Assembly (NCBI RefSeq): GCF_000737315.1
Contig: NZ_JMCB01000006.1
Coordinates: forward strand, 868,001 to 932,000
Source of the DNA: Hyalangium minutum
GTDB lineage: Bacteria; Myxococcota; Myxococcia; Myxococcales; Myxococcaceae
Reading direction: 5' to 3'
Length of the DNA stretch: 64,000 bases
A program made the position numbers and the translations under genes. Positions 1,938-12,442 of this stretch are shown piece by piece (positions within the stretch are counted from its first letter, which is position 1; each line of letters starts with the position of its first letter). The notes under the pieces are model-generated. The model saw nothing but the letters and a program-made list of their open reading frames with translations, ran no database searches and was not told where the DNA came from.

Positions 1938-3848
1938 ATGACTGAAGACACACCGCTCGCGGGCTCGTTCGAAGGAGACACCCGCCGGGCGCTCCAGAAG
2001 CGACCCTCCCCTGCGCTGGCGTTGCCGCTGGCGCTCGCCGCCTGCCTGATCAGCGCCACGGCGCTCGCGCAGCCCGCGGGGCTCCCCGAGGTCGAACTGG
2101 AGCGACTGTCGCTCAACCCCAGTGGCCAGGGTTCGTTGCTGCTGGGCACCGGCGAGCTGCTGCAGAACGGCGCGTACCGCTTCTCCCTCACGGGCCATTA
2201 CGAGAATGATCCGCTCGTGTTCTTCCTGGACGGGGAGCGCATCGGCTCGGTGGTGAAGCACCGGGTGACGGGCCACCTGACGGGCGCGTATGCCCTGTCG
2301 AACCGGCTCGAGGTGTCCGCGCAGGTGCCCGTGCTCTTCATGCAGAGCGGGGACGATATGACGGCCCGCGGCGTGGGGACTCCTCGGAAGGGGCTGTCGC
2401 TGGGCACGCCGTACCTGGGGCTGCGACTGGGCGTGCTGTCCGAGCGTGATGCAGACGTGGTGGACCTCTCCATTGGCGTCCAGGCGGGCCTGCCGCTGGG
2501 CAGCGCCACGGCGCTGGCCCGGGAGAGCTCCCTGCGCGCCCTGCCCAGCATCATGGTGGGCAAGCGGTTCGGCTTCCTGCGCGCGGGTCTGGACGCGGGC
2601 GCGATGCTGCGTCCGCGGGTGGCCCTGGGCAATGAGAGCGTGAAGGATGAGCTGGGCGACGAGCTGCGCCTGGGCGGCGTCGTGTCCACCACGGGCGAGG
2701 GGCTGCGCGGCGAGCTGGATGTGATCGCCTCCATCCCCTTCCGGCGCGAGGGCACCTCCGTCGAGGCGTTGGCCGGCGCGCGCATGCCGCTGAGTGAGGC
2801 GCTGGAGGCCTACGCGCTGGCGGGCGTGGGCTTTGGCAATGCGCCGGGCACGCCGACTTTCCGCGGACTGCTGGGCGTGGCCTACGGGAGCACGCCGCCC
2901 AAGTGCGTGGCGGGCGGTCAGCACACGCCCGAGCAGTGCCCGGATCTGGATGATGACAATGACGGGGTGAAGAACCGCGTGGACGCGTGCCCGACGCAGG
3001 GTGGGCGCGTGGACGCGTCAGGCTGCCCGCTGAAGGACACGGACCAGGACGGCGTGCTGGATCAGGACGACTCTTGCCCGACGGTGGCCGGCGAGGCCGC
3101 GCTCAAGGGCTGCCCGGACGCGGACAAGGACGGCATCGAGGACGCGGCGGACAAGTGCCCGCAGGTGTTCGGCCTGGCGCAGTTCCAGGGCTGCCCGGAC
3201 ACGGACAAGGACGGCATCGAGGACTCGGCGGACAAGTGCCCCACCGAGGCGGGTCCGGCCGAGCGCCAGGGCTGCCCGGTGCGTGACACGGACAAGGACG
3301 GCTTCGTGGACGAGCAGGACAGCTGCCCGAACGAGCCCGGCATCGCCGAGCTGAAGGGCTGCCCGGCCAAGGACAGCGACAATGACGGCGTGGCGGACCA
3401 CCGCGACAACTGCCCGACCGAGGCGGGTCCCGCGGACAACCAGGGTTGCCCGGCCAAGCAGAAGCAGCAGGTGGCCATCCAGTCCGGCCGCATCGAGCTG
3501 AAGGACACGGTCTACTTCGACACGGCCAAGGCGACCATCCAGTCGCGCAGCTTCAAGCTGCTGGATCAGGTGGCGAGTATCCTCAAGGCGCACCCGGAGC
3601 TGGATCGGGTGGTCATCGAGGGCCACACGGACAACCAGGGCAAGCCGGCCGCGAACATGACGCTGTCTCACCGGCGTGCGGAGGCGGTGCGCAACTACCT
3701 CATCAACAAGGGGGTGGAGCCGCAGCGCCTGGAGGCCAAGGGCTATGGGCAGGAGCGGCCCATCGCTGACAACAAGACTGCGAAGGGCCGGGCGACGAAC
3801 CGCCGGGTCGACTTCATCACCGCGCCTCGCGAGGGCACCCAGCAGTAA
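1938..3848 (+). CDS. TraB-like OmpA family protein with signal peptide, beta-barrel and TSP3 repeats
   Basis: Signal peptide ending ATALA; barrel strands; about eight DxDxDG..D.CP repeats; IEGHTDNQG and GRATNRRVDF. Confidence 0.92.
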   Translation: MTEDTPLAGSFEGDTRRALQKRPSPALALPLALAACLISATALAQPAGLPEVELERLSLNPSGQGSLLLGTGELLQNGAYRFSLTGHYENDPLVFFLDGERIGSVVKHRVTGHLTGAYALSNRLEVSAQVPVLFMQSGDDMTARGVGTPRKGLSLGTPYLGLRLGVLSERDADVVDLSIGVQAGLPLGSATALARESSLRALPSIMVGKRFGFLRAGLDAGAMLRPRVALGNESVKDELGDELRLGGVVSTTGEGLRGELDVIASIPFRREGTSVEALAGARMPLSEALEAYALAGVGFGNAPGTPTFRGLLGVAYGSTPPKCVAGGQHTPEQCPDLDDDNDGVKNRVDACPTQGGRVDASGCPLKDTDQDGVLDQDDSCPTVAGEAALKGCPDADKDGIEDAADKCPQVFGLAQFQGCPDTDKDGIEDSADKCPTEAGPAERQGCPVRDTDKDGFVDEQDSCPNEPGIAELKGCPAKDSDNDGVADHRDNCPTEAGPADNQGCPAKQKQQVAIQSGRIELKDTVYFDTAKATIQSRSFKLLDQVASILKAHPELDRVVIEGHTDNQGKPAANMTLSHRRAEAVRNYLINKGVEPQRLEAKGYGQERPIADNKTAKGRATNRRVDFITAPREGTQQ

Positions 3849-3865: not shown

Positions 3866-6800
3866 ATGAGGAATGCATCCTTGAAGAACATCCTTCGCAA
3901 CGCACTGCTGGCCGTCACCCTGTGCGCGCTGCCAGCCATGGCAGGGCGGGACATCTACCTGCTGGGTGACGGGAGCGACGGAGTGCTCGACGTCACCACG
4001 AGCCTGCCGGCCCCGGTCGTCATCAACAGCTACGCCCGGGTCACGACCGACGCGGCCGTGGGTGCCACTGAGCTGCTCGTGGACACCAACACGGGCTTCA
4101 GTCCCGGGGATCTCGTGCTGGTGCACCAGTCCACGGGGTACACCCCTGAGCCGACGCCGGGTGACATCTCGGACATCAACCTCACCACCGGCGCGGTGGG
4201 CCGCTGGGAGCTGGCGCGGCTCAGCATGGCGGCGGCAGAGCCGGGCAAGCTGAAGCTGGCCTCACCGCTGCTCTACGCTTACACGGCGACGGGCGCGCAG
4301 GCCGTCAAGGTGCCCGAGTACACGAACGTCACCATCCGGGGCGGCGCGGTGCTGACCGCCTCTGCCTGGGACGGCTCCAAGGGTGGCATCCTGGCCTTCC
4401 TGGCCAACGGCAGCGTGGTCATCGAGTCGGCAGCCGCCATCGACGTCACGGGCAAGGGCTTCCGGGGTGGGCTGTACGTCAAAGACTCCACGACGACCCG
4501 CCGGGGATGCTCCGGCATCACCGAGGGTTCGCCCGGCGGCGCTCAGCGGGCCGAGGGTGTCGCACGCGGTCTGTACGGCGCCAGCTCCACCGGACGCGGC
4601 AATGGTGCCAACGGTGGCGGTGGAGGCGTGTGCTACCTGGCAGGCGGCGCGGGCGGCGGCAGCGCGGGCCGGGGCGGTGATGGCGGCAAGACGCACTCCT
4701 CGGCGGATGGCGCGCGCGCTGTGGGAGGCATCGGCGGCTCCAAGTTCAGCAGCACCGTCGATCCGCTCAACCGGATGGTCTTTGGCGGCGGTGGCGGCTC
4801 GGGCCACGGCATCGTTGATCTGACGCCTCCGGCGAACCAGGGAGGCGCGGGTGGCGGCATCATCTTCATGCGGGCCCAGTCCTTGGACGGCGGTGACGGC
4901 ATCATCCTGGCCAATGGCGGCTCCGGCCCCACCATCCAAGGCAACACCACCCTGAGCGGCGCGTTTGGTGGAGGCGGCGGCGGCACGGTGTACCTGCGCT
5001 TCGCCCAGCTCGCGAACTGCAACGTGCTCTCTCAGGGCGGCCGCGGCGGCGATACAAGCCTCAATACGGCCTTCATTGGCCCGGGTGGCGGTGGTGGCGG
5101 TGGGCTCCTGCTCCTGCAGTCCCAGACGGGCTCTTGCACAGTCTTCGCCGATGGAGCAGTCGCGGGCCAGACGCCCACGCAGCGTCCCGGCGACACTGTG
5201 AACTACGGCGCGAGCCCCGGAATCCCGGGCAAGGTGGAACAGATCCTCAATGATGGCTTCCCCGAGACCATGCCGGTTCCCGTGGTGGTCACCCCCGCCA
5301 ACGGGAGTTCCACCAACAACCTGCGGCCCACCTTCTCGGGCACGCTCGACCCGGCCTTCCCGCCGGGTTCCGAGATCATCCTCACGGTGACGATCGGCGC
5401 GACCACGCTGACCATCCCCCGCCTGCCCGCAGCGGCCAACTGGAGCTTCACGCCGACCTCGGATCTGGCGGTGGGCACCTACACCGTCTCGGCCGTGCTC
5501 ACGAAGCAGGAGGTCTACAGCCAACAGAGCAACACCAACACCTTCACGATCGACATCACCGCGCCCGCGGCGCCGGTGGTGGTAACGCCGGCCAACGGCT
5601 CGCGGACCAATGACAACACGCCGACGTACACGGGTACGGCGGAGCCGGGCAGCACCGTCACGGTGCGCGTGGACGGCACCTCGGTGGGAACTGTCATGGC
5701 GGACGCGTCGGGCAACTGGACGCTCACGCCCACCGCGCCCCTGGCGAACGGCTCGCACACGGTGAATGCCACGGCGACGGACGCGGCGGGCAACGTCAGC
5801 CCCGTGTCCAACACCAACACCTTCACGGTGGACGCCACGCCGCCGACGGTGGTGGTGCAGACGCCTGCGGAGGGCTCGACCACCAATGACAACACGCCGA
5901 CCTACAGCGGCACGGTGTCGGACAACAATCCTGGCCCGTACACGGTGGAGATCCGGGTGGATGGCACCCTGCTGACCACCCTGACGGTGCCGGGCCCGAA
6001 CTGGACGTACACGCCGACGACGCCGCTGGCGGATGGCCCGCACACGGTGACGGCCACGGCGACGGATGCGGTGAACAACACGGCCACCGACAGCAATGCC
6101 TTCGCGGTGGATGCGACGCCTCCGACGGTGGTGGTGCAGACGCCCGCAGAGGGTTCGACGACCACCGATAACACGCCGACCTACAGCGGCACGGTGGAGG
6201 CCGGAGCGACGGTGACGCTGACGGTGGACGGCGTCGCGGTGGGCCCAGTGGTTGTGACGGGCACGACGTGGACGTACACGCCGACGACGCCGCTGGCGGA
6301 TGGGCCGCACACGGTGACGGCCACGGCGACGGACGCTGCGGGCAACACGGCCACCGACAGCAACGCCTTCACGGTGGACGCCACGCCTCCGGCGGTGGTG
6401 GTGCAGACGCCTGCCGAGGGCTCGACGACCACCGATAACACGCCGACCTACAGCGGTACGGTGGAAGCGGGAGCGACGGTGACGTTGACGGTGGACGGCG
6501 TCGCGGTGGGCCCGGTGGTTGTGACGGGCACGACGTGGACGTACACGCCGACGACGCCGCTGGCGGATGGCCCGCACACGGTGACAGCCACGGCGACGGA
6601 TGCGGCGGGCAACACGGCCACCGACAGCAACGCCTTCACGGTGGACGCCACGCCTCCGGCGGTGGTGGTGCAGACGCCTGCGGAGGGTTCGACGACCACC
6701 GATAACACGCCGACCTACAGCGGCACGGTGGAGGCGGGAGCGACGGTGACGTTGACGGTGGACGGCGTCGCGGTGGGCCCGGTGATTGTGATGGGCACGA

Positions 6801-8143
6801 TGTGGACGTACACGCCGACGACGCCGCTGGCGGATGGGCCGCACACGGTGACGGCCACGGCGACGGACGCTGCGGGCAACACGGCCACCGACAGCAATGC
6901 TTTCACGGTGGACGCCACGGCTCCGGCGGTGTCGGTGACGACGCCTGCGGAGGGCTCGCTGATCAACGACAGCACGCCGGTCTACAGCGGCACGGCCGAG
7001 CCGGGCAGCAGTGTCTCGGTGAGCGTGGATGGCACGGTGGTGGGGACAGTCACGGCGGATGCCAGCGGTAACTGGACCGTCACCTCCAGCACTCCGCTGC
7101 CGGATGGTCCGCACACGGTGACGGCCACGGCCACGGACGCGGCGGGCAACACGGCCACCGACAGCAACACCTTCACGGTGGACACCGTGGCGCCGGGCGC
7201 TCCGGTGGTGAACACGCCGGCCGACGGCTCGACCATCGCCGACAACACGCCGACCTACAGTGGCACCGCCGATCCGGGCAGCACCGTCACCATCAGCGTG
7301 GATGGCACGGTGGTGGGCACCACCACTGCGGACTCCAACGGCGACTGGAGCTTCACGCCGGGCACGGGCATTTCGAACGGCTCGCACACAGTGAACGCCA
7401 CGGCCTCGGACGCCGCGGGCAACGTCAGCCCCGTGTCCAACACCAACACGTTCACGGTGGATGCCTCCATCCCGGCCGCTCCGGTCATCACCGGTCCCGC
7501 CAACAACACGGTGACGGATGACAACACGCCCGTCATCTCCGGCACGGCCCCGCCGAACAGCACGGTCACCGTGTACGTCGATGGCACCCCGGTGGGCACC
7601 ACCACCTCGGACGCGGCGGGCAACTGGACGTTCACGCCGACCACCCCGCTGGCCGACGGTCCGCATGACATCACCGCCACCACGACGAACGGCGTGGGCA
7701 ACGTCAGCCCGGTGTCCAACACCGTCCACATCACCATCGACACGGGCGTGCCGGACACCTCCATCGTCTCCGGACCCTCGGGCGAGACGCAGAGCACCAG
7801 CGCCACATTCGAGTTCGGCTCCACCGAGTCTGGCGTCACCTACGAGTGCAAGCTCGACGGTGCGGCGGAGTTCACGGAGTGCCCGAACCCGGCCACCTTC
7901 GCGAACCTCGCCCCGGGCCAGCACACCCTCGAGGTGCGCGCCCGTGACTCGGCCGGCAATGTGGATCCGACTCCGGCCACCGCCACGTGGACTGTCGTGC
8001 AGACCCCGCCCACCGGCGGCGATCGCGACTTCCTCGGCGACGGCATCGGCTGCGCGGCCTCGGGCGGTGATCCGTCCGCGCTGGCGATGATGGGCCTGGG
8101 CCTGCTCGCGGTGATGGTGGTCCGCCGGCGGCGCCAGCAGTAG
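3866..8143 (+). CDS. Cell-surface adhesin, AgmC-like N-terminus, glycine-rich region, about 10 Ig-like domains, MYXO-CTERM sorting tag
   Basis: Signal peptide (PAMA); repeated TP.YSGT...DG.HTVTATATDAAGN Ig units; C-terminus GIGCAASGG plus TM helix and RRRRQQ. Confidence 0.9.
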   Translation: MRNASLKNILRNALLAVTLCALPAMAGRDIYLLGDGSDGVLDVTTSLPAPVVINSYARVTTDAAVGATELLVDTNTGFSPGDLVLVHQSTGYTPEPTPGDISDINLTTGAVGRWELARLSMAAAEPGKLKLASPLLYAYTATGAQAVKVPEYTNVTIRGGAVLTASAWDGSKGGILAFLANGSVVIESAAAIDVTGKGFRGGLYVKDSTTTRRGCSGITEGSPGGAQRAEGVARGLYGASSTGRGNGANGGGGGVCYLAGGAGGGSAGRGGDGGKTHSSADGARAVGGIGGSKFSSTVDPLNRMVFGGGGGSGHGIVDLTPPANQGGAGGGIIFMRAQSLDGGDGIILANGGSGPTIQGNTTLSGAFGGGGGGTVYLRFAQLANCNVLSQGGRGGDTSLNTAFIGPGGGGGGGLLLLQSQTGSCTVFADGAVAGQTPTQRPGDTVNYGASPGIPGKVEQILNDGFPETMPVPVVVTPANGSSTNNLRPTFSGTLDPAFPPGSEIILTVTIGATTLTIPRLPAAANWSFTPTSDLAVGTYTVSAVLTKQEVYSQQSNTNTFTIDITAPAAPVVVTPANGSRTNDNTPTYTGTAEPGSTVTVRVDGTSVGTVMADASGNWTLTPTAPLANGSHTVNATATDAAGNVSPVSNTNTFTVDATPPTVVVQTPAEGSTTNDNTPTYSGTVSDNNPGPYTVEIRVDGTLLTTLTVPGPNWTYTPTTPLADGPHTVTATATDAVNNTATDSNAFAVDATPPTVVVQTPAEGSTTTDNTPTYSGTVEAGATVTLTVDGVAVGPVVVTGTTWTYTPTTPLADGPHTVTATATDAAGNTATDSNAFTVDATPPAVVVQTPAEGSTTTDNTPTYSGTVEAGATVTLTVDGVAVGPVVVTGTTWTYTPTTPLADGPHTVTATATDAAGNTATDSNAFTVDATPPAVVVQTPAEGSTTTDNTPTYSGTVEAGATVTLTVDGVAVGPVIVMGTMWTYTPTTPLADGPHTVTATATDAAGNTATDSNAFTVDATAPAVSVTTPAEGSLINDSTPVYSGTAEPGSSVSVSVDGTVVGTVTADASGNWTVTSSTPLPDGPHTVTATATDAAGNTATDSNTFTVDTVAPGAPVVNTPADGSTIADNTPTYSGTADPGSTVTISVDGTVVGTTTADSNGDWSFTPGTGISNGSHTVNATASDAAGNVSPVSNTNTFTVDASIPAAPVITGPANNTVTDDNTPVISGTAPPNSTVTVYVDGTPVGTTTSDAAGNWTFTPTTPLADGPHDITATTTNGVGNVSPVSNTVHITIDTGVPDTSIVSGPSGETQSTSATFEFGSTESGVTYECKLDGAAEFTECPNPATFANLAPGQHTLEVRARDSAGNVDPTPATATWTVVQTPPTGGDRDFLGDGIGCAASGGDPSALAMMGLGLLAVMVVRRRRQQ
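6113..6913 (+). repeat. Three near-identical 267-bp tandem Ig-domain repeats inside the adhesin gene
   Basis: Unit starts at 6113, 6380 and 6647, with the next diverged unit at 6914; spacing exactly 267 bp. Confidence 0.95.
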
Positions 8144-8290: not shown

Positions 8291-8890
8291 TCATTGCGGC
8301 GTATCCGAAGGTGGTGGGGCGGCGGGTGGCGGTGAGGATGGGGTTGTTGGAGATGGGGGAGGGGTTGGTGCGGGCGCGGTGGCCGGCATAGGGGGCGGCT
8401 CAGGCGTACCGGGGGACGTCTCACGCTCCGGAGCCACTGGCGGTTCGGGAGAAGCGGGAGGGGGTCCAACCCAATCCCCCCGCGGTGGAGGGGCCTCGGC
8501 CACCACCTCGCCTTGAGGAGTGACTGCGTACACATACCGCCAGTCGAGAACGCGTCCGCTCGGGCCGCCGCATCGATGAAAGCGCTGCTCCAGCACGACG
8601 TAGTACAAGCCCGGCGTCGGGCCCGTGAAGACAGCGACATCCAAGCCCTGCTCAGGACTGGCGCATCCGTCGAAGAGCCCTGGAAACGGCTGGGTTCTCA
8701 CCAACTCGCGAACGGCCGCCGCTGCGGCGACCGCTGCACCCGCCTCTACAGGCGCGACAAGCGTCTTGACCGATTGCTCGTCTTGTTCGGTCTCCGGCCA
8801 CACCACGGGTTCCTTCCAAGCGGCAGCCCTGGGAGCACCACACCCGGACACCATCGCGACGACCCCTGCAAGCGCGTATCTCCTGAACAT
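8291..8890 (-). CDS. Lipoprotein, partner/immunity-like, copy 1, Pro-rich tail
   Basis: Lipobox VSGC; core GCASPEQGLDVAVFTGPTPGLYYVVLEQRF..CGG is shared with 9150..9776. Confidence 0.8.
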   Translation of the reverse strand: MFRRYALAGVVAMVSGCGAPRAAAWKEPVVWPETEQDEQSVKTLVAPVEAGAAVAAAAAVRELVRTQPFPGLFDGCASPEQGLDVAVFTGPTPGLYYVVLEQRFHRCGGPSGRVLDWRYVYAVTPQGEVVAEAPPPRGDWVGPPPASPEPPVAPERETSPGTPEPPPMPATAPAPTPPPSPTTPSSPPPAAPPPSDTPQ

Positions 8891-8932
8891 TTCGTTTCTC
8901 CCTTCCGCTGCGGGGTAGCATCCGGCAAGCGG

Positions 8933-9028
8933 CTACTCGCGCAACAGCTGCAGAGATCCCTCACGGCATCGAGGCACGGTGATACGGAGGCGAGTAGGTT
9001 CGCTCGGGGCACAATGGCCGAGAGTGAT
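8933..9028 (-). pseudogene. 3' relic of a JAB-like lipoprotein gene
   Basis: Hand translation gives ITLGHCAPSEPTRLRITVPRCREGSLQLLRE*, homologous to VTLGMCTPRGADPRRNTVPSCREGALQLLRE* ending at 9801. Confidence 0.85.
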
Positions 9029-9055
9029 GTGTCCGTGGGCGACGCACTGAGATCA

Positions 9056-9154
9056 ATGTGCGCCCCCAATCCTCTCTTTGGCGACCTCCTGCTCAAACTC
9101 GGAATCGTCACGCCCAGCCAGGCCCAGGAAGTGCTCGCGCTGCAACCCCTCACC
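9056..9154 (+). pseudogene. Degenerate duplicate of the first 99 bp of the adenylate cyclase gene (10982..11080)
   Basis: Ungapped hand alignment shows 12 mismatches in 99 bp; encodes [33 protein letters not shown] versus [33 protein letters not shown]. Confidence 0.9.
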
Positions 9155-9776
9155 CGGGCGGAACCGGCGCCGGGGAGGTGGAAGGTGGTGATGCTGGGGG
9201 AGGGGCAGCCGGAGTTGGGGCGGCAGGCGCTGGTGGAGGCGGAGAGGTTGGCCCTGGAGTGGGCGCAGGCGTACCGGTGCGCGTTTCCGGAGGGGGAGCA
9301 GCAGGTGGCGGTGTTGGCTCGGGTGCAGCAGGGCCTCGGCGGGGAGGGGAGGAGACAGGCGGTTCCCCCCGCGGTGGCGGGGCCTTCTCCACTACCTCAC
9401 CTTGGGGAGTGACTGCGTACACATAGTCCCAGTCGAGAAGGCGCCCGATGGGGCCACCGCACCGATCGAAGCGCTCCTCCAAGACCACGTAATACAGGCC
9501 GGGCGTTGGGCCCGTGAAGACGGCGACATCCATTCCCTGCTCAGGACTGGCGCACCCCTGGAAGAGCCTTGGAAACGGGTTGGTTTTCACCATCTCGCGG
9601 ATGGCGGCCGCTGCGGCGAGCGCGGCCCCCGCCTCCGTCAGGGGGACGATGGTCTTGACCGATTGCTCGTCTTGCTCGGTCTCCGGCCACTTCACCCCTC
9701 CCTTCCAGGAGGCAGCGGGCGCGGCGCAACCCTGCAGCATCGCCACGAGCACAGCGGATGCACACGCCTTGATCAT
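9150..9776 (-). CDS. Lipoprotein, partner/immunity-like, copy 2, Pro-rich tail
   Basis: MIKACASAVLVAMLQGC lipobox; paralog of 8291..8890; lies immediately downstream of the JAB-like gene. Confidence 0.82.
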   Translation of the reverse strand: MIKACASAVLVAMLQGCAAPAASWKGGVKWPETEQDEQSVKTIVPLTEAGAALAAAAAIREMVKTNPFPRLFQGCASPEQGMDVAVFTGPTPGLYYVVLEERFDRCGGPIGRLLDWDYVYAVTPQGEVVEKAPPPRGEPPVSSPPRRGPAAPEPTPPPAAPPPETRTGTPAPTPGPTSPPPPAPAAPTPAAPPPASPPSTSPAPVPPG

Positions 9777-9800
9777 TTCTCTCTCCTGCATCGCACCCGT

Positions 9801-10554
9801 CTACTCGCGCAACAACTGCAGAGCTCCTTCCCGGCAGGAGGGCACGGTATTGCGACGAGGGTCGGCGCCGCGTGGGGTGCACATGCCGAGGGTTAACCCA
9901 CCGGGCCCGGACATGGCTCCACTGTTGGACCTCGCCCGTGGGAAAGTAGCGCAGGATGATGCGTGCGCCGTCCTGGCGCTCCGCCACCAGCGCCGACGCC
10001 ATCTCAATGACTGTGTTCTTGTAGAGGGCGGGAGCCGGGTTGCCTGGATAGAGGCGGACTTCCGCCATGGCCACGAGAGGTTTGAACGCGTCCGTCGGCC
10101 ATGCTTTGAGATCACGCGAAGACGGAGGCGCGGCGCAGAGGTGGTTGTGGACATATCCCACGACCCACACCTGAGAGGCAGGGTAGTCGTCATCCTTCAC
10201 GGTGAAGAAGGGCTGACATGCCTCGTGGTTTCCCGGCACGGGCTCGGAGAGCCGCCAGGACAGGGAGTCGCCGTCCCCGGCGACGTAGACTGTCGAGCAG
10301 TACTCCGTGGACAGGCCCACGATGGGCCGCTGCGTGACCCAGTCACACACCTTGGCGCCTGGGAGCGTGAGTAACGCGTCCGCAACATCTCGCAGCAAGG
10401 AGATAGGAATGGAGGTGTCCCCCGTGGGCATCTCGACGGCTGGCACTTCCGACCACGGTCCCCTGGGAAGGGGCGCATCTTGCGCAGGAGTGTTGGGCGG
10501 GGCCGAGGTAGCGCACGCGGCTCCGGCCAAGAGAAACGGAAGCACAAATCGCAT
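9801..10554 (-). pseudogene. Lipoprotein with JAB/MPN-like metallo-motif, interrupted by a +1 frameshift at about 9893-9894
   Basis: MRFVLPFLLAGAAC signal; EYC...GYVHNHLCAAPPSSRD motif. Removing one base from GTTAACCCTC restores WVTLGMC...LQLLRE*, matching the relic at 8933..9028. Confidence 0.7.
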
Positions 10555-10981
10555 GGAGGTGTCTCCACGAAGGAGCGGGCCACGGCGGTGGGGCGCATCC
10601 ACTGTCCTCCCAGCCTAGCGGTGGGCGCCCTCCTCCATCGAATCTCCTTTCACCCACAGTCCCACGGCCCAGAGCTCACGCCTTCGGGTCGTCTGATGTA
10701 AGACAGAGCCTACTCACTGAGGTGTCCCTCTCTCTGCCCGGAAGAGGGCCCTCCGCTCCCATCTCCTCCGAGCGCCTCCTGGCCTCGGTCCCACCTCTGG
10801 GGTCAGTCCTCGGCGCTCCGCCTCTCGGGGCTGGCGGCCTGGAGGGCGGCAGAGCAGGGGTCTTTTGAGACTCGCCTTCGTGTTTCTCTTCCTCCCGAGG
10901 GGGGAGCCGGTGGAGTAGTCTCGGATCCCAGGAAAGGACCCTCCCCTTGCCAGCCCTCGGCTGGCTCCGTCTGCCCGTTCG

Positions 10982-12442
10982 ATGAGCGCCTCCAGTCCCC
11001 TCTTCGGCGACCTCCTGCTCAAGCTGGGCATCGTCACGCCCAGTCAGGTCCAGGAAGCGCTCGCGCTGCAAGCCCTCACCGGCCAGCGCGTGGGCGAGGC
11101 CCTCATCTCCCTGGGCTATGTCACCCGAGAGCAAATCCAGGACGCGCTCGGCGAGGCGCTCGGGCTCACCAGTGAGAAGGTGGCCTCGCACCCGCCGCTG
11201 GGCGAGCTGCTGGTGGGGATGAAGTACATCACCCTGGCCCAGCTCGAAGAGGCGCTGGCCTTCCAACGCAAGGATGGGCGCAAGCTCGGCGAAATCCTCG
11301 TCGAGATGGGGTACTGCACCTACAAGCAAATCTACGAGGCGCTCAGCCTGCAGGGCCGCATCTCCGGCCGCCAAGAGCCGCCCCGCCCCGCCACCGAAGG
11401 CAAGCACCGCGTCATGGTGGTGGATGACAGCCCGCTGGCGTGCGCCTTCGTGCAGGAGGGGCTGGAGACGCTGGGCTACGAGGTGCTCTGCTTCGACGAC
11501 CCGTACAAGGCGCTGGAGCAGGTGGGCCGGGTGCAGCCGGCCATCGTCCTGACGGATCTGGACATGCCGGGCATCGACGGGGTGGAGCTGTGCCGGCGGC
11601 TGAAGGACGGCCCGGCGCGGCAAGTGCCCGTCATCATCCTCACGGCCAATGACGGAGAGACGGAGCGCGTGCAGGGCCTGCGCGCGGGCGCGGACGACTA
11701 CGTGAACAAGTCCGCCTCCATGAACGAGCTGTCGGCGCGCATCGAGAACGTGATGCGCCGCACGGGCGAGACGGAGCGCGTGCGCAAGCTGTTCGCGCGC
11801 TACACCTCGGACGCGGTGGTGGAGGAGATTCTCAAGAGCCCGGACACGGTGGTGCTCACGGGCGAGAAGCGCGTCGTCACCGTGCTCTTCGCGGACATCC
11901 GCAACTTCACCGGGCTGGCGGAGAGCCTGCCTCCCGAGCAGGTGGTGGGTGTGCTCAACCAGGTGCTCGGGCGGCTGTCGGACGCGGTGCTCACGTGCGG
12001 CGGCACGCTGGACAAGTTCCTCGGGGACGGGCTGATGGCGGTGTGGGGCGCGCCGGTGCACCGCTCCGATGATGCGCTGCGGGCGCTGCAGGCCTCCAAG
12101 ATGATGATGGTGGCCATGCAGGAGCTGCGCGCGGAGGCCGAGGCCGAGTGGATTGCGGATGCGCGCAGTGGGCAGCCGCTGGTGTTGGAGCTGGGCATTG
12201 GCATCAACTCGGGCGAGGTGGTGGCCGGCAACATTGGCGGCGCCATGCGCACCGAGTACACCTGCATTGGCGACGCGGTGAATGTGGCCTCGCGCCTGTG
12301 CGCCCTGGCGGGGGCGGGAGAGATTCTGGTGGGTGAGCGCACCCGCTTCCTCGTCCAGGGCCGGGAGATGGCGTTCGAGGACCTGCCGCCGGTGCGGCTC
12401 AAGGGCAAGCAGCAGCCCGTGCCGCTCTACCGCGCCTTGTAA
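10982..12442 (+). CDS. Class III adenylate cyclase with tandem MshEN-like motifs and a receiver domain
   Basis: LGxxLLxxGxxTxxQxxEALxxQ repeats; REC (VVDDS, TDLDMPG, K); cyclase [30 protein letters not shown]. Lys in DKF indicates ATP specificity. Confidence 0.9.

Follow-up and report, generated by a model that had tools for sequence, protein, structure and literature searches.

A myxobacterial two-gene cassette of a JAB-like lipoprotein and a partner lipoprotein, a candidate envelope effector-immunity pair

A toxin system that couples a JAB domain to a lipoprotein immunity protein, Tox-JAB-1/Imm65, was predicted as a polymorphic toxin system of Bacteroidetes in 2012 and has never been characterised; Imm65 was the sole lipoprotein immunity protein in the collection of that survey, and the known prokaryotic JAB domains are intracellular (Zhang et al., PMC3482391). 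This predicted pair is the closest precedent for the locus analysed in this study, in which a gene for a JAB-like lipoprotein is followed by a gene for a partner lipoprotein. The locus occupies positions 8291–10554 of a Hyalangium minutum window, that is, a stretch of 64,000 nucleotides (nt) from contig NZ_JMCB01000006.1 (868,001 to 932,000, forward strand). Like Tox-JAB-1/Imm65, it combines a domain carrying E/HxH/S/D residues with a downstream gene whose product resembles an alpha+beta immunity protein with a signal peptide and a lipobox. Unlike Tox-JAB-1, which is the C-terminal tip of large RHS-repeat proteins, the JAB-like protein here is a free-standing lipoprotein of 250 amino acids (aa), and the two systems occur in different phyla; Pfam scans of the JAB-like and partner proteins detected no sequence relationship to Tox-JAB-1/Imm65. 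An earlier annotation of this DNA (hereafter the original prediction) held that no characterised system of this type was known. Indeed none has been characterised, but a pair with a lipoprotein immunity protein had already been predicted in 2012 (PMC3482391).

In myxobacteria, which are the main model of bacterial kin discrimination, the only known lipoprotein toxins are the SitA proteins, nucleases that need access to the cytoplasm. SitA consists of an N-terminal escort domain of ~375 aa, belonging to one of six families, and a C-terminal nuclease acting in the cytoplasm, and its immunity protein SitI is not transferred (PMC8546572). Similar to SitA/SitI (PMC5562445, PMC8546572), the locus would encode a myxobacterial lipoprotein effector with an immunity-like gene adjacent downstream, many loci are found per genome, and the alleles differ between close relatives. 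In contrast, the whole JAB-like protein is only ~250 aa long and has neither an escort nor a nuclease domain, an architecture that rules out SitA membership (PMC8546572). The partner also differs from SitI, as it is an exported lipoprotein without an inner-membrane signal.

The Tae/Tai, Tle/Tli and X-Tfe/X-Tfi pairs of type VI and type IV secretion systems comprise envelope-targeting effectors with dedicated, adjacent and often lipidated periplasmic immunity proteins, and orphan immunity genes are common among them. Neutralisation in the periplasm by an adjacent lipoprotein partner would follow the same logic at the present locus. However, those effectors have no lipoprotein signal of their own and depend on a secretion machine encoded nearby, while no such machine is linked here. 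The locus further resembles the orphan toxin-tip/immunity modules downstream of cdiA and rhs, in that a displaced 3′ fragment of a toxin gene and an intact cognate immunity gene lie beside the current cassette. In contact-dependent inhibition (CDI) and Rhs systems, a C-terminal tip is swapped onto a constant body, whereas here the whole small gene pair is the unit exchanged.

A literature search found no paper on this myxobacterial lipoprotein family. Annotation pipelines label it 'hypothetical' because Pfam, NCBIfam, PADLOC and PHROGs hold no model for it, and it is small, with 35 cluster representatives among 1.84 billion proteins. The JAB-partner family is uncatalogued, and its pattern of occurrence across genomes resembles that of a toxin with an antidote.

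A dedicated pair of exported lipoproteins

The pairing of the two genes was evaluated at 48 loci from contigs of one genome per species. At all 48 loci, the JAB-like gene was followed on the same strand by the partner gene with a gap of 7–280 nt, and the same order was found in Hyalangium minutum and in three distant metagenome relatives (22–34% identity); a downstream, co-oriented position is the order typical of immunity genes. Wherever the JAB-like gene was scored as intact (39–40 JAB-anchored and 8–9 partner-anchored cases), a partner gene was always next to it. The sole broken partner gene after an intact JAB-like gene, at locus L001 in a metagenome-assembled genome (MAG), has two frame changes that are possibly assembly errors.

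The cassette is restricted to Myxococcota and is patchy there, and its named sources are all genera of Myxococcaceae/Archangiaceae. It was carried by 28 genomes, with a maximum of seven loci in one Archangium MAG, and tandem arrays were present at L038 (three pairs), L020 (two pairs) and L036 (one JAB-like gene with two partner genes). The neighbourhoods differed from locus to locus and contained ordinary genes, e.g., those for kinases, histidine kinases and signalling proteins. A conserved housekeeping operon was ruled out, as the neighbourhoods vary and the cassette is patchy and often degenerate. These results indicated that the pair is a real, dedicated and self-contained cassette, in agreement with the dedicated pairing and the multi-copy, arrayed occurrence put forward in the original prediction. 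The term 'polymorphic' used there does not apply in its classical modular sense, since all copies belong to a single conserved family, and selection on it is purifying (omega about 0.2–0.3); instead of variable toxin tips on a conserved trafficking body, there is a single conserved domain, and the exchanged unit is the whole pair.

The JAB-like gene of the window (allele 1, JAB1) lies on the reverse strand at 9801–10554 and has 250 codons when a frameshift described below is corrected. From the start at 10554, the protein begins MRFVLPFLLAGAAC and carries a lipobox Cys (lipobox AGAAC). It contains STEYCST and VVGYVHNHLCAAPPSSRDL, so that the motifs EYC, HNHLC and PSSRD form the pattern E...HNH-x5-PSSRD; a lipoprotein with the EYC Glu and HNH-x5-PSSRD, as originally described, can be read directly from the sequence. 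The corrected protein had ~234 myxobacterial relatives of ~250 aa at 65–86% identity and was conserved end to end as one unit. In relatives down to 22% identity, H136, H138, C140, D121, D123, Y85 and four further Cys/Trp positions were invariant, E84, S145 and D148 were at least 90% conserved, and six Cys residues were conserved. Judged from these alignments, the conservation of the motif exceeds chance. The lipobox Cys was present in 104 of 120 homologues scored, 90 of which had Ala at position +2. Because of the six conserved Cys and the lipobox, the protein was placed in the oxidising envelope.

The residues E84, H136-N-H138, S145 and D148 follow the order, though with x6 instead of x(7) not the full spacing, of the JAMM pattern E-x(n)-H-x-H-x(7)-S-x(2)-D, an order that JAMM/MPN+ proteins (Rpn11, AMSH, CSN5) and RadC-like JAB proteins share as E ... 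[VI]VG[YW]xH[NS]HP ... S-x-x-D. Likewise, the local context VVGYxHNHP...PSxxD resembles AHNHPSG..PSxxD of RadC and VVGWYHSHP...SGVD of Rpn11, and the Glu-to-His spacing is 52 residues here vs. 61 in PSMD14 (the Rpn11/PSMD14 sequence used for comparison was verified against PDB chains). Unlike JAMM/MPN+ and prokaryotic JAB domains, the family has an HxH-to-Ser loop that is one residue shorter (x6), and the protein is exported and disulfide-rich. In the window, the motif at 10136–10141 reads HNHLC, with a Leu shared with some close relatives (L001, L002 and L003), while most of the family, RadC and Rpn11 have Pro at this position (HNHPC in the family).

When aligned by hhalign with Pfam-annotated RadC proteins, HNHPxx..PSxxD was matched with P = 1.2e-4 and a probability of 56% over 18 columns, with a one-residue gap opened in the HxH-to-Ser loop; against PSMD14, the HNHP..PSxxD core was aligned over 39 columns with a probability of 1.4%, both matches being weak. 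The window protein itself had no Pfam match at E ≤ 1, and no nuclease domain. Across members, sub-threshold Pfam matches were to Prok-JAB (4/22, best 0.13), DUF4329 (2/22, 0.067) and RadC (0.038, for member P0266), and these three JAB-clan families were the only ones that recurred among the weak matches. Some members are named 'JAB domain-containing' or 'RPN8/RPN11' by two source databases. When 1.84 billion cluster representatives were searched exhaustively with HMMER, 35 matches were returned, all of them family members or fragments except one repetitive protein of 1700 aa; a few were full-length relatives at 22–34% identity, and no bridge to canonical JAB families was found. Searches of the family profiles against PDB sequences gave no JAB protein and one match to oxalate oxidase (E = 0.31). 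In an AlphaFold2 (AF2) model of the JAB-like protein (pLDDT 70.5, pTM 0.71), the order of elements (a helix, a hairpin from E84 and a strand ending in HNH) is compatible with a JAB fold, while residues 141–170 are poorly modelled (block-mean pLDDT 52–57). Taken together, the protein is likely a JAB-like zinc hydrolase, an identity assigned from the motif alone.

The partner gene of the same cassette (partner 1; 9150–9776, reverse strand) is intact and encodes a Cys-containing alpha+beta domain of ~115 aa with a Pro-rich tail of ~70 aa. Its stop is at 9150, and 9776 is the likely start, because an AGGAGAG Shine-Dalgarno-like sequence lies upstream and the homologues start with MIKAC; 9791 is an alternative start. 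Partner 1 had 209 relatives, all myxobacterial and distributed as for the JAB-like protein, with invariant positions including G21 and C22 (lipobox), C80 and C111. Its AF2 model consists of one long helix packed on four strands. L050, the relative that is most distant, lacks the Pro-rich tail, and L051 retains little of it. JAB-like and partner distances were correlated (r = 0.68, Mantel 0/2000), the partner evolving ~1.3 times faster, and omega values of 0.21 for the JAB-like gene and 0.28 for the partner gene indicated purifying selection on both. In Myxococcus xanthus, a Lys at position +2 keeps a lipoprotein in the inner membrane (PMC3222651); neither the partner nor the JAB-like protein carries this retention signal.

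Frameshift, allele replacement and partner retention

Nucleotide alignment with nine related loci showed that JAB1 has one extra base at ~9894 (9893–9896, reverse strand; GGGTT-A-ACC against GGGTC-ACT, or GTTAACC vs. GTC-ACT). The open reading frame as sequenced, from 10602 or 10554 to 9541, departs from all homologues after RARWV (residue 220), so that two invariant Cys and the conserved ...LLRE terminus are missing, and its last 250 nt overlap with partner 1. In the corrected frame, the downstream part encodes TLGMCTPRG...CREGALQLLRE*, which matches the homologues, and the stop TAG at 9803–9801 is present in this frame only. Either JAB1 is a pseudogene or its sequence contains an error, and the window at face value holds two intact partner genes and no intact JAB-like gene. 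The original prediction overlooked the 1-nt insertion and took the full-length gene as intact. It also placed a Cys-containing lipoprotein within 25 bp of the end of that gene; the downstream partner is present, but the JAB stop concerned exists in the corrected frame only.

The second partner gene (partner 2; 8291–8890, reverse strand) is likewise intact and appears to be the cognate partner of a deleted allele-2 JAB-like gene (JAB2). It shares 75% aa and 77% nt identity with partner 1 (dN 0.17, dS 0.58). A tblastn match to JAB residues 220–250 located the main relic of JAB2 at 8933–9028 on the reverse strand, comprising codons 220–250 and the stop, ITLGHCAPSEPTRLRITVPRCREGSLQLLRE*. The relic is 61% identical to JAB1 and, in nt, 94% identical to the 3′ end of the JAB-like gene that is intact at locus L077. 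The original prediction described a diverged second partner that keeps about 32 terminal codons of its own JAB-like gene, and 31 codons plus the stop were found at 9028–8933. An additional 24-nt piece on the same strand (9031–9054) corresponds to codons 148–155 (DLSASPTD) and is 92% identical to L077 1431–1454, inside the L077 JAB-like gene. Between partner 1 and the main relic lies a further feature that the original prediction did not include, a 102-nt fragment on the forward strand (9053–9154) with the first 33 codons of the divergent cyclase gene, 87% identical in nt to its source copy at 10979–11080 and 88% to L077 528–629. The insertion in JAB1 (after codon 220) coincides with the codon where the JAB2 relic begins (220), which could be chance, a site prone to recombination or deletion, or a vestige of the joining of both cassettes.

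The short contig L077 is the closest available relative at this site and carries one cassette, with an intact JAB-like gene and a partner-2-type protein, P0142. Partner 2 is 93% identical in aa to P0142 vs. 75% to partner 1. At the nt level, the window and L077 share 97% identity in the cyclase gene flank, 92% in the intergenic region, 94% in the JAB relic codons 220–250 and 91% in partner 2, vs. 78% in JAB1 and 80% in partner 1. JAB1 and partner 1 are nearer to L001 (87–90%), the flank of which is just 91% identical to the window. The simplest reading of these sequences is a resident cassette of partner-2 type, entry of the other allele into the site, and then deletion of the resident JAB-like gene with its partner kept. 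That partner 2 arose by a simple, recent tandem duplication was ruled out by the identities of partner 2 and the relic to L077 (91–94%) and to partner 1 (77%). The duplicated cyclase start at 9053–9154 marks the junction of the incoming and resident cassettes; its distance to each of the available versions is about the same.

To quantify decay of the two genes, disrupted copies were counted, for the JAB-like gene as frameshifted, truncated or internally deleted. At JAB-anchored loci, 13 of 53 JAB-like copies were disrupted vs. 3 of 54 partner copies (Fisher p = 0.007), a difference that was not significant after correction for gene length (p = 0.12). Several of the broken JAB-like genes come from Illumina isolate assemblies (L035, L042, L043, L044 and L045), and degenerate cassettes are found in the M. 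xanthus representative (L048) and at both Hyalangium versicolor loci (L035 and L042). A metagenome scan anchored on the partner is more telling, because the JAB-anchored sample is biased to loci that still hold the JAB-like gene. In that scan, 8–9 of the 23 assessable loci had an intact JAB-like gene upstream, seven had a broken one or a relic, and seven had none. The pattern of orphan immunity genes and displaced toxin fragments was thus found in the window and, with the JAB-like gene broken or absent, at 14/23 partner-anchored loci, both samples being small. This supports the original view of orphan partners in a turning-over array: partner genes often outlive the JAB-like gene, and the window keeps the old partner after allele replacement.

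Effector-immunity reading and its alternatives

We regard it as evenly balanced whether the cassette encodes a periplasm-acting effector and its lipoprotein immunity protein. The observations that favour this are the linkage, the export signals, the conserved residues, the copy-number behaviour, the asymmetric decay and the allele replacement. According to this effector-immunity reading, the locus would hold copies of a self-sufficient myxobacterial conflict cassette made up of two genes. The first gene would give a Sec/Lol-exported, disulfide-rich lipoprotein, the E...HNHP-x5-PS-x2-D residues of which most likely coordinate zinc; the protein would then be a JAB/RadC-like hydrolase with its site of action in the cell envelope. 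From the second gene would come a small lipoprotein that binds and blocks the enzyme in the periplasm of the producer, i.e., an immunity protein. Neighbours might deliver the enzyme through outer membrane exchange, in vesicles or along some other contact route, and cells that meet it would gain by keeping partner genes after their own JAB-like gene is lost. In the window, the JAB1 and partner 1 allele would have entered, the resident JAB-like gene would then have been cut to 8 + 31 codons while partner 2 stayed intact, and the incoming JAB1 would later have been frameshifted, unless the extra base is a sequencing error.

Several results weigh against the effector-immunity reading. The HxH-to-Ser loop is one residue short of JAMM, and the profile-profile matches, over 18 and 39 columns, are confined to the HNHP..PSxxD motif. 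Nothing above threshold was obtained when the JAB-like and partner proteins were scanned with Pfam, NCBIfam, PADLOC and PHROGs. In Foldseek searches with the JAB AF2 model, no PDB or BFVD structure, including those with a JAB fold, matched at E ≤ 0.001; this structural negative is weak, because the second half of the motif lies in the poorly modelled residues 141–170. Of the JAMM-like motif proposed originally, the conserved residues and their order were upheld, but the JAB fold was not recovered by Pfam, NCBIfam or Foldseek, and the JAB/DUF4329 match that had been expected from such checks appeared only as the sub-threshold matches to the three JAB-clan families. The partner model, too, had no Foldseek match in PDB at E ≤ 0.001, the best being the PepSY-like DUF2874 (E = 0.12). 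Whole-gene dN/dS revealed no positive or diversifying selection in either gene, and no secretion system or mobile element is linked to the cassette. The disruption asymmetry at JAB-anchored loci loses significance with length correction, and the partner-anchored sample is small, with 8/24 loci from one sample. At L071 (~2923–3555) and L072 (~604–1248), partner-like lipoprotein genes of 53–58% identity are both preceded by a gene that ends ...LIGPTCRRR, and a JAB-like gene is absent; they may be a diverged partner subfamily fixed beside another gene, with a JAB-independent role. Finally, the catalytic activity, its block by the partner, any toxic effect, the target and the way of delivery are all predicted.

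The same observations were compared with what other roles would predict. The pair could be a self-directed periplasmic hydrolase, e.g., for remodelling of the cell wall or of envelope proteins in growth, gliding or sporulation, with the partner as inhibitor or activator, the copies being paralogues and the decay reflecting redundancy. Such a role would suit the strict pairing, the export of both proteins to the same predicted compartment, the purifying selection on both genes, and neighbourhoods that lack secretion and mobility genes and hold signalling and motility genes instead (e.g., AgmC-like genes and kinases). However, an enzyme of this kind would not be expected to be patchy in distribution, to be degenerate in the M. 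xanthus representative and in Hyalangium versicolor, to sit in unrelated genomic contexts, or to be exchanged as alleles at one locus between near relatives, and a regulator should decay along with its enzyme, yet the partner persists without it at 14/23 loci. We consider a self-directed hydrolase unlikely. A non-enzymatic pair, in which both lipoproteins form a structural or recognition complex at the surface (e.g., for adhesion or as a kin-recognition tag) and HNH...D is a structural metal site or serves folding, seems highly improbable. In its favour, the searches recovered no enzyme fold, the two proteins are exported and rich in Cys, and allelic variation among close relatives would suit a recognition tag. 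However, the invariant residues fit the JAB/RadC catalytic motif in order and with near-exact spacing, and only JAB-clan families recur among the weak Pfam matches. Moreover, a two-part tag fails if either half is lost, while it is commonly one half only that is lost.

The Myxococcaceae/Archangiaceae genera carry TraAB, and the cassette's named sources all belong to genera of these families. Delivery specifically by TraAB outer membrane exchange would make the JAB-like protein a seventh, non-SitA class of kin-discrimination toxin that acts in the recipient periplasm with no entry into the cytoplasm. A lipoprotein effector without an inner-membrane retention signal is the type of cargo moved by this route, and the copy number and allele turnover resemble those of sitAI loci. 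However, there is no escort domain, and outer membrane exchange would move both proteins, since neither carries a +2 Lys inner-membrane signal; the partner should thus be co-transferred and protect the recipients. That an immunity protein would travel with its toxin counts against the effector-immunity reading as well. The analogy to a SitA-like outer-membrane-exchange toxin drawn originally is weakened by this, and by the lack of escort and nuclease domains. Transport to prey in vesicles, or some other way of delivery, would fit just as well. We consider TraAB-specific delivery improbable.

In its fullest form, the effector-immunity reading would define a new class of myxobacterial interbacterial effectors: a free-standing, lipid-anchored JAB-type hydrolase with a periplasmic target and no escort or translocation domain, countered by a repertoire of small-lipoprotein immunity proteins, whole cassettes being swapped between strains at fixed chromosomal sites and retained partners recording past encounters. 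This extended version is put forward tentatively, as it is unlikely to hold in all its parts. If true, it would add to the known arsenal a second lipoprotein effector family, unrelated to SitA and with envelope-located immunity, make the JAB toxins predicted long ago (Tox-JAB-1/2) accessible to experiment for the first time, perhaps point to a novel target of a JAB-type hydrolase in the envelope, and be the first JAB-fold toxin with an envelope target to be demonstrated. A bench test is worthwhile because intact natural alleles of this locus exist in relatives, allele 2 in L077 and allele-1-like versions in L001 and L002; the window and L077 form a natural allele pair at one locus for analysing cognate specificity.

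Other cassette arrangements and neighbouring genes

Three further loci show unusual arrangements. In Corallococcus interemptor, three cassettes lie in direct tandem (L038 460–4221), the first with a frameshifted JAB-like gene, and in a MAG two convergent cassettes are 2.7 kb apart (L005 10001–15055). At L039 9959–11239, in an Archangium MAG, JAB-like residues 35–217 and the partner domain are encoded in one stop-free stretch, the sequence of which suggests a deletion that joined both genes; the product could be a natural single-chain complex or a mere decay product.

In the window, the region of the cassette has ~70% G+C, and a promoter and terminator scan of the locus was uninformative. The product of the divergent cyclase gene (10982–12442, forward strand) has receiver and adenylate/guanylate cyclase domains together with two MshEN-type c-di-GMP-binding motifs (NF053729, two stretches), an architecture that could link c-di-GMP sensing to the synthesis of cyclic nucleotide monophosphates. 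On the other side, convergent with partner 2, a gene on the forward strand (3866–8143) encodes a protein of 1425 aa. Its N-terminal domain is of the AgmC type (gliding motility, NF047640), and it also carries a MYXO-CTERM sorting signal and nine Big_13 Ig-like repeats, several of them near-identical at the DNA level (about 6180–6980).

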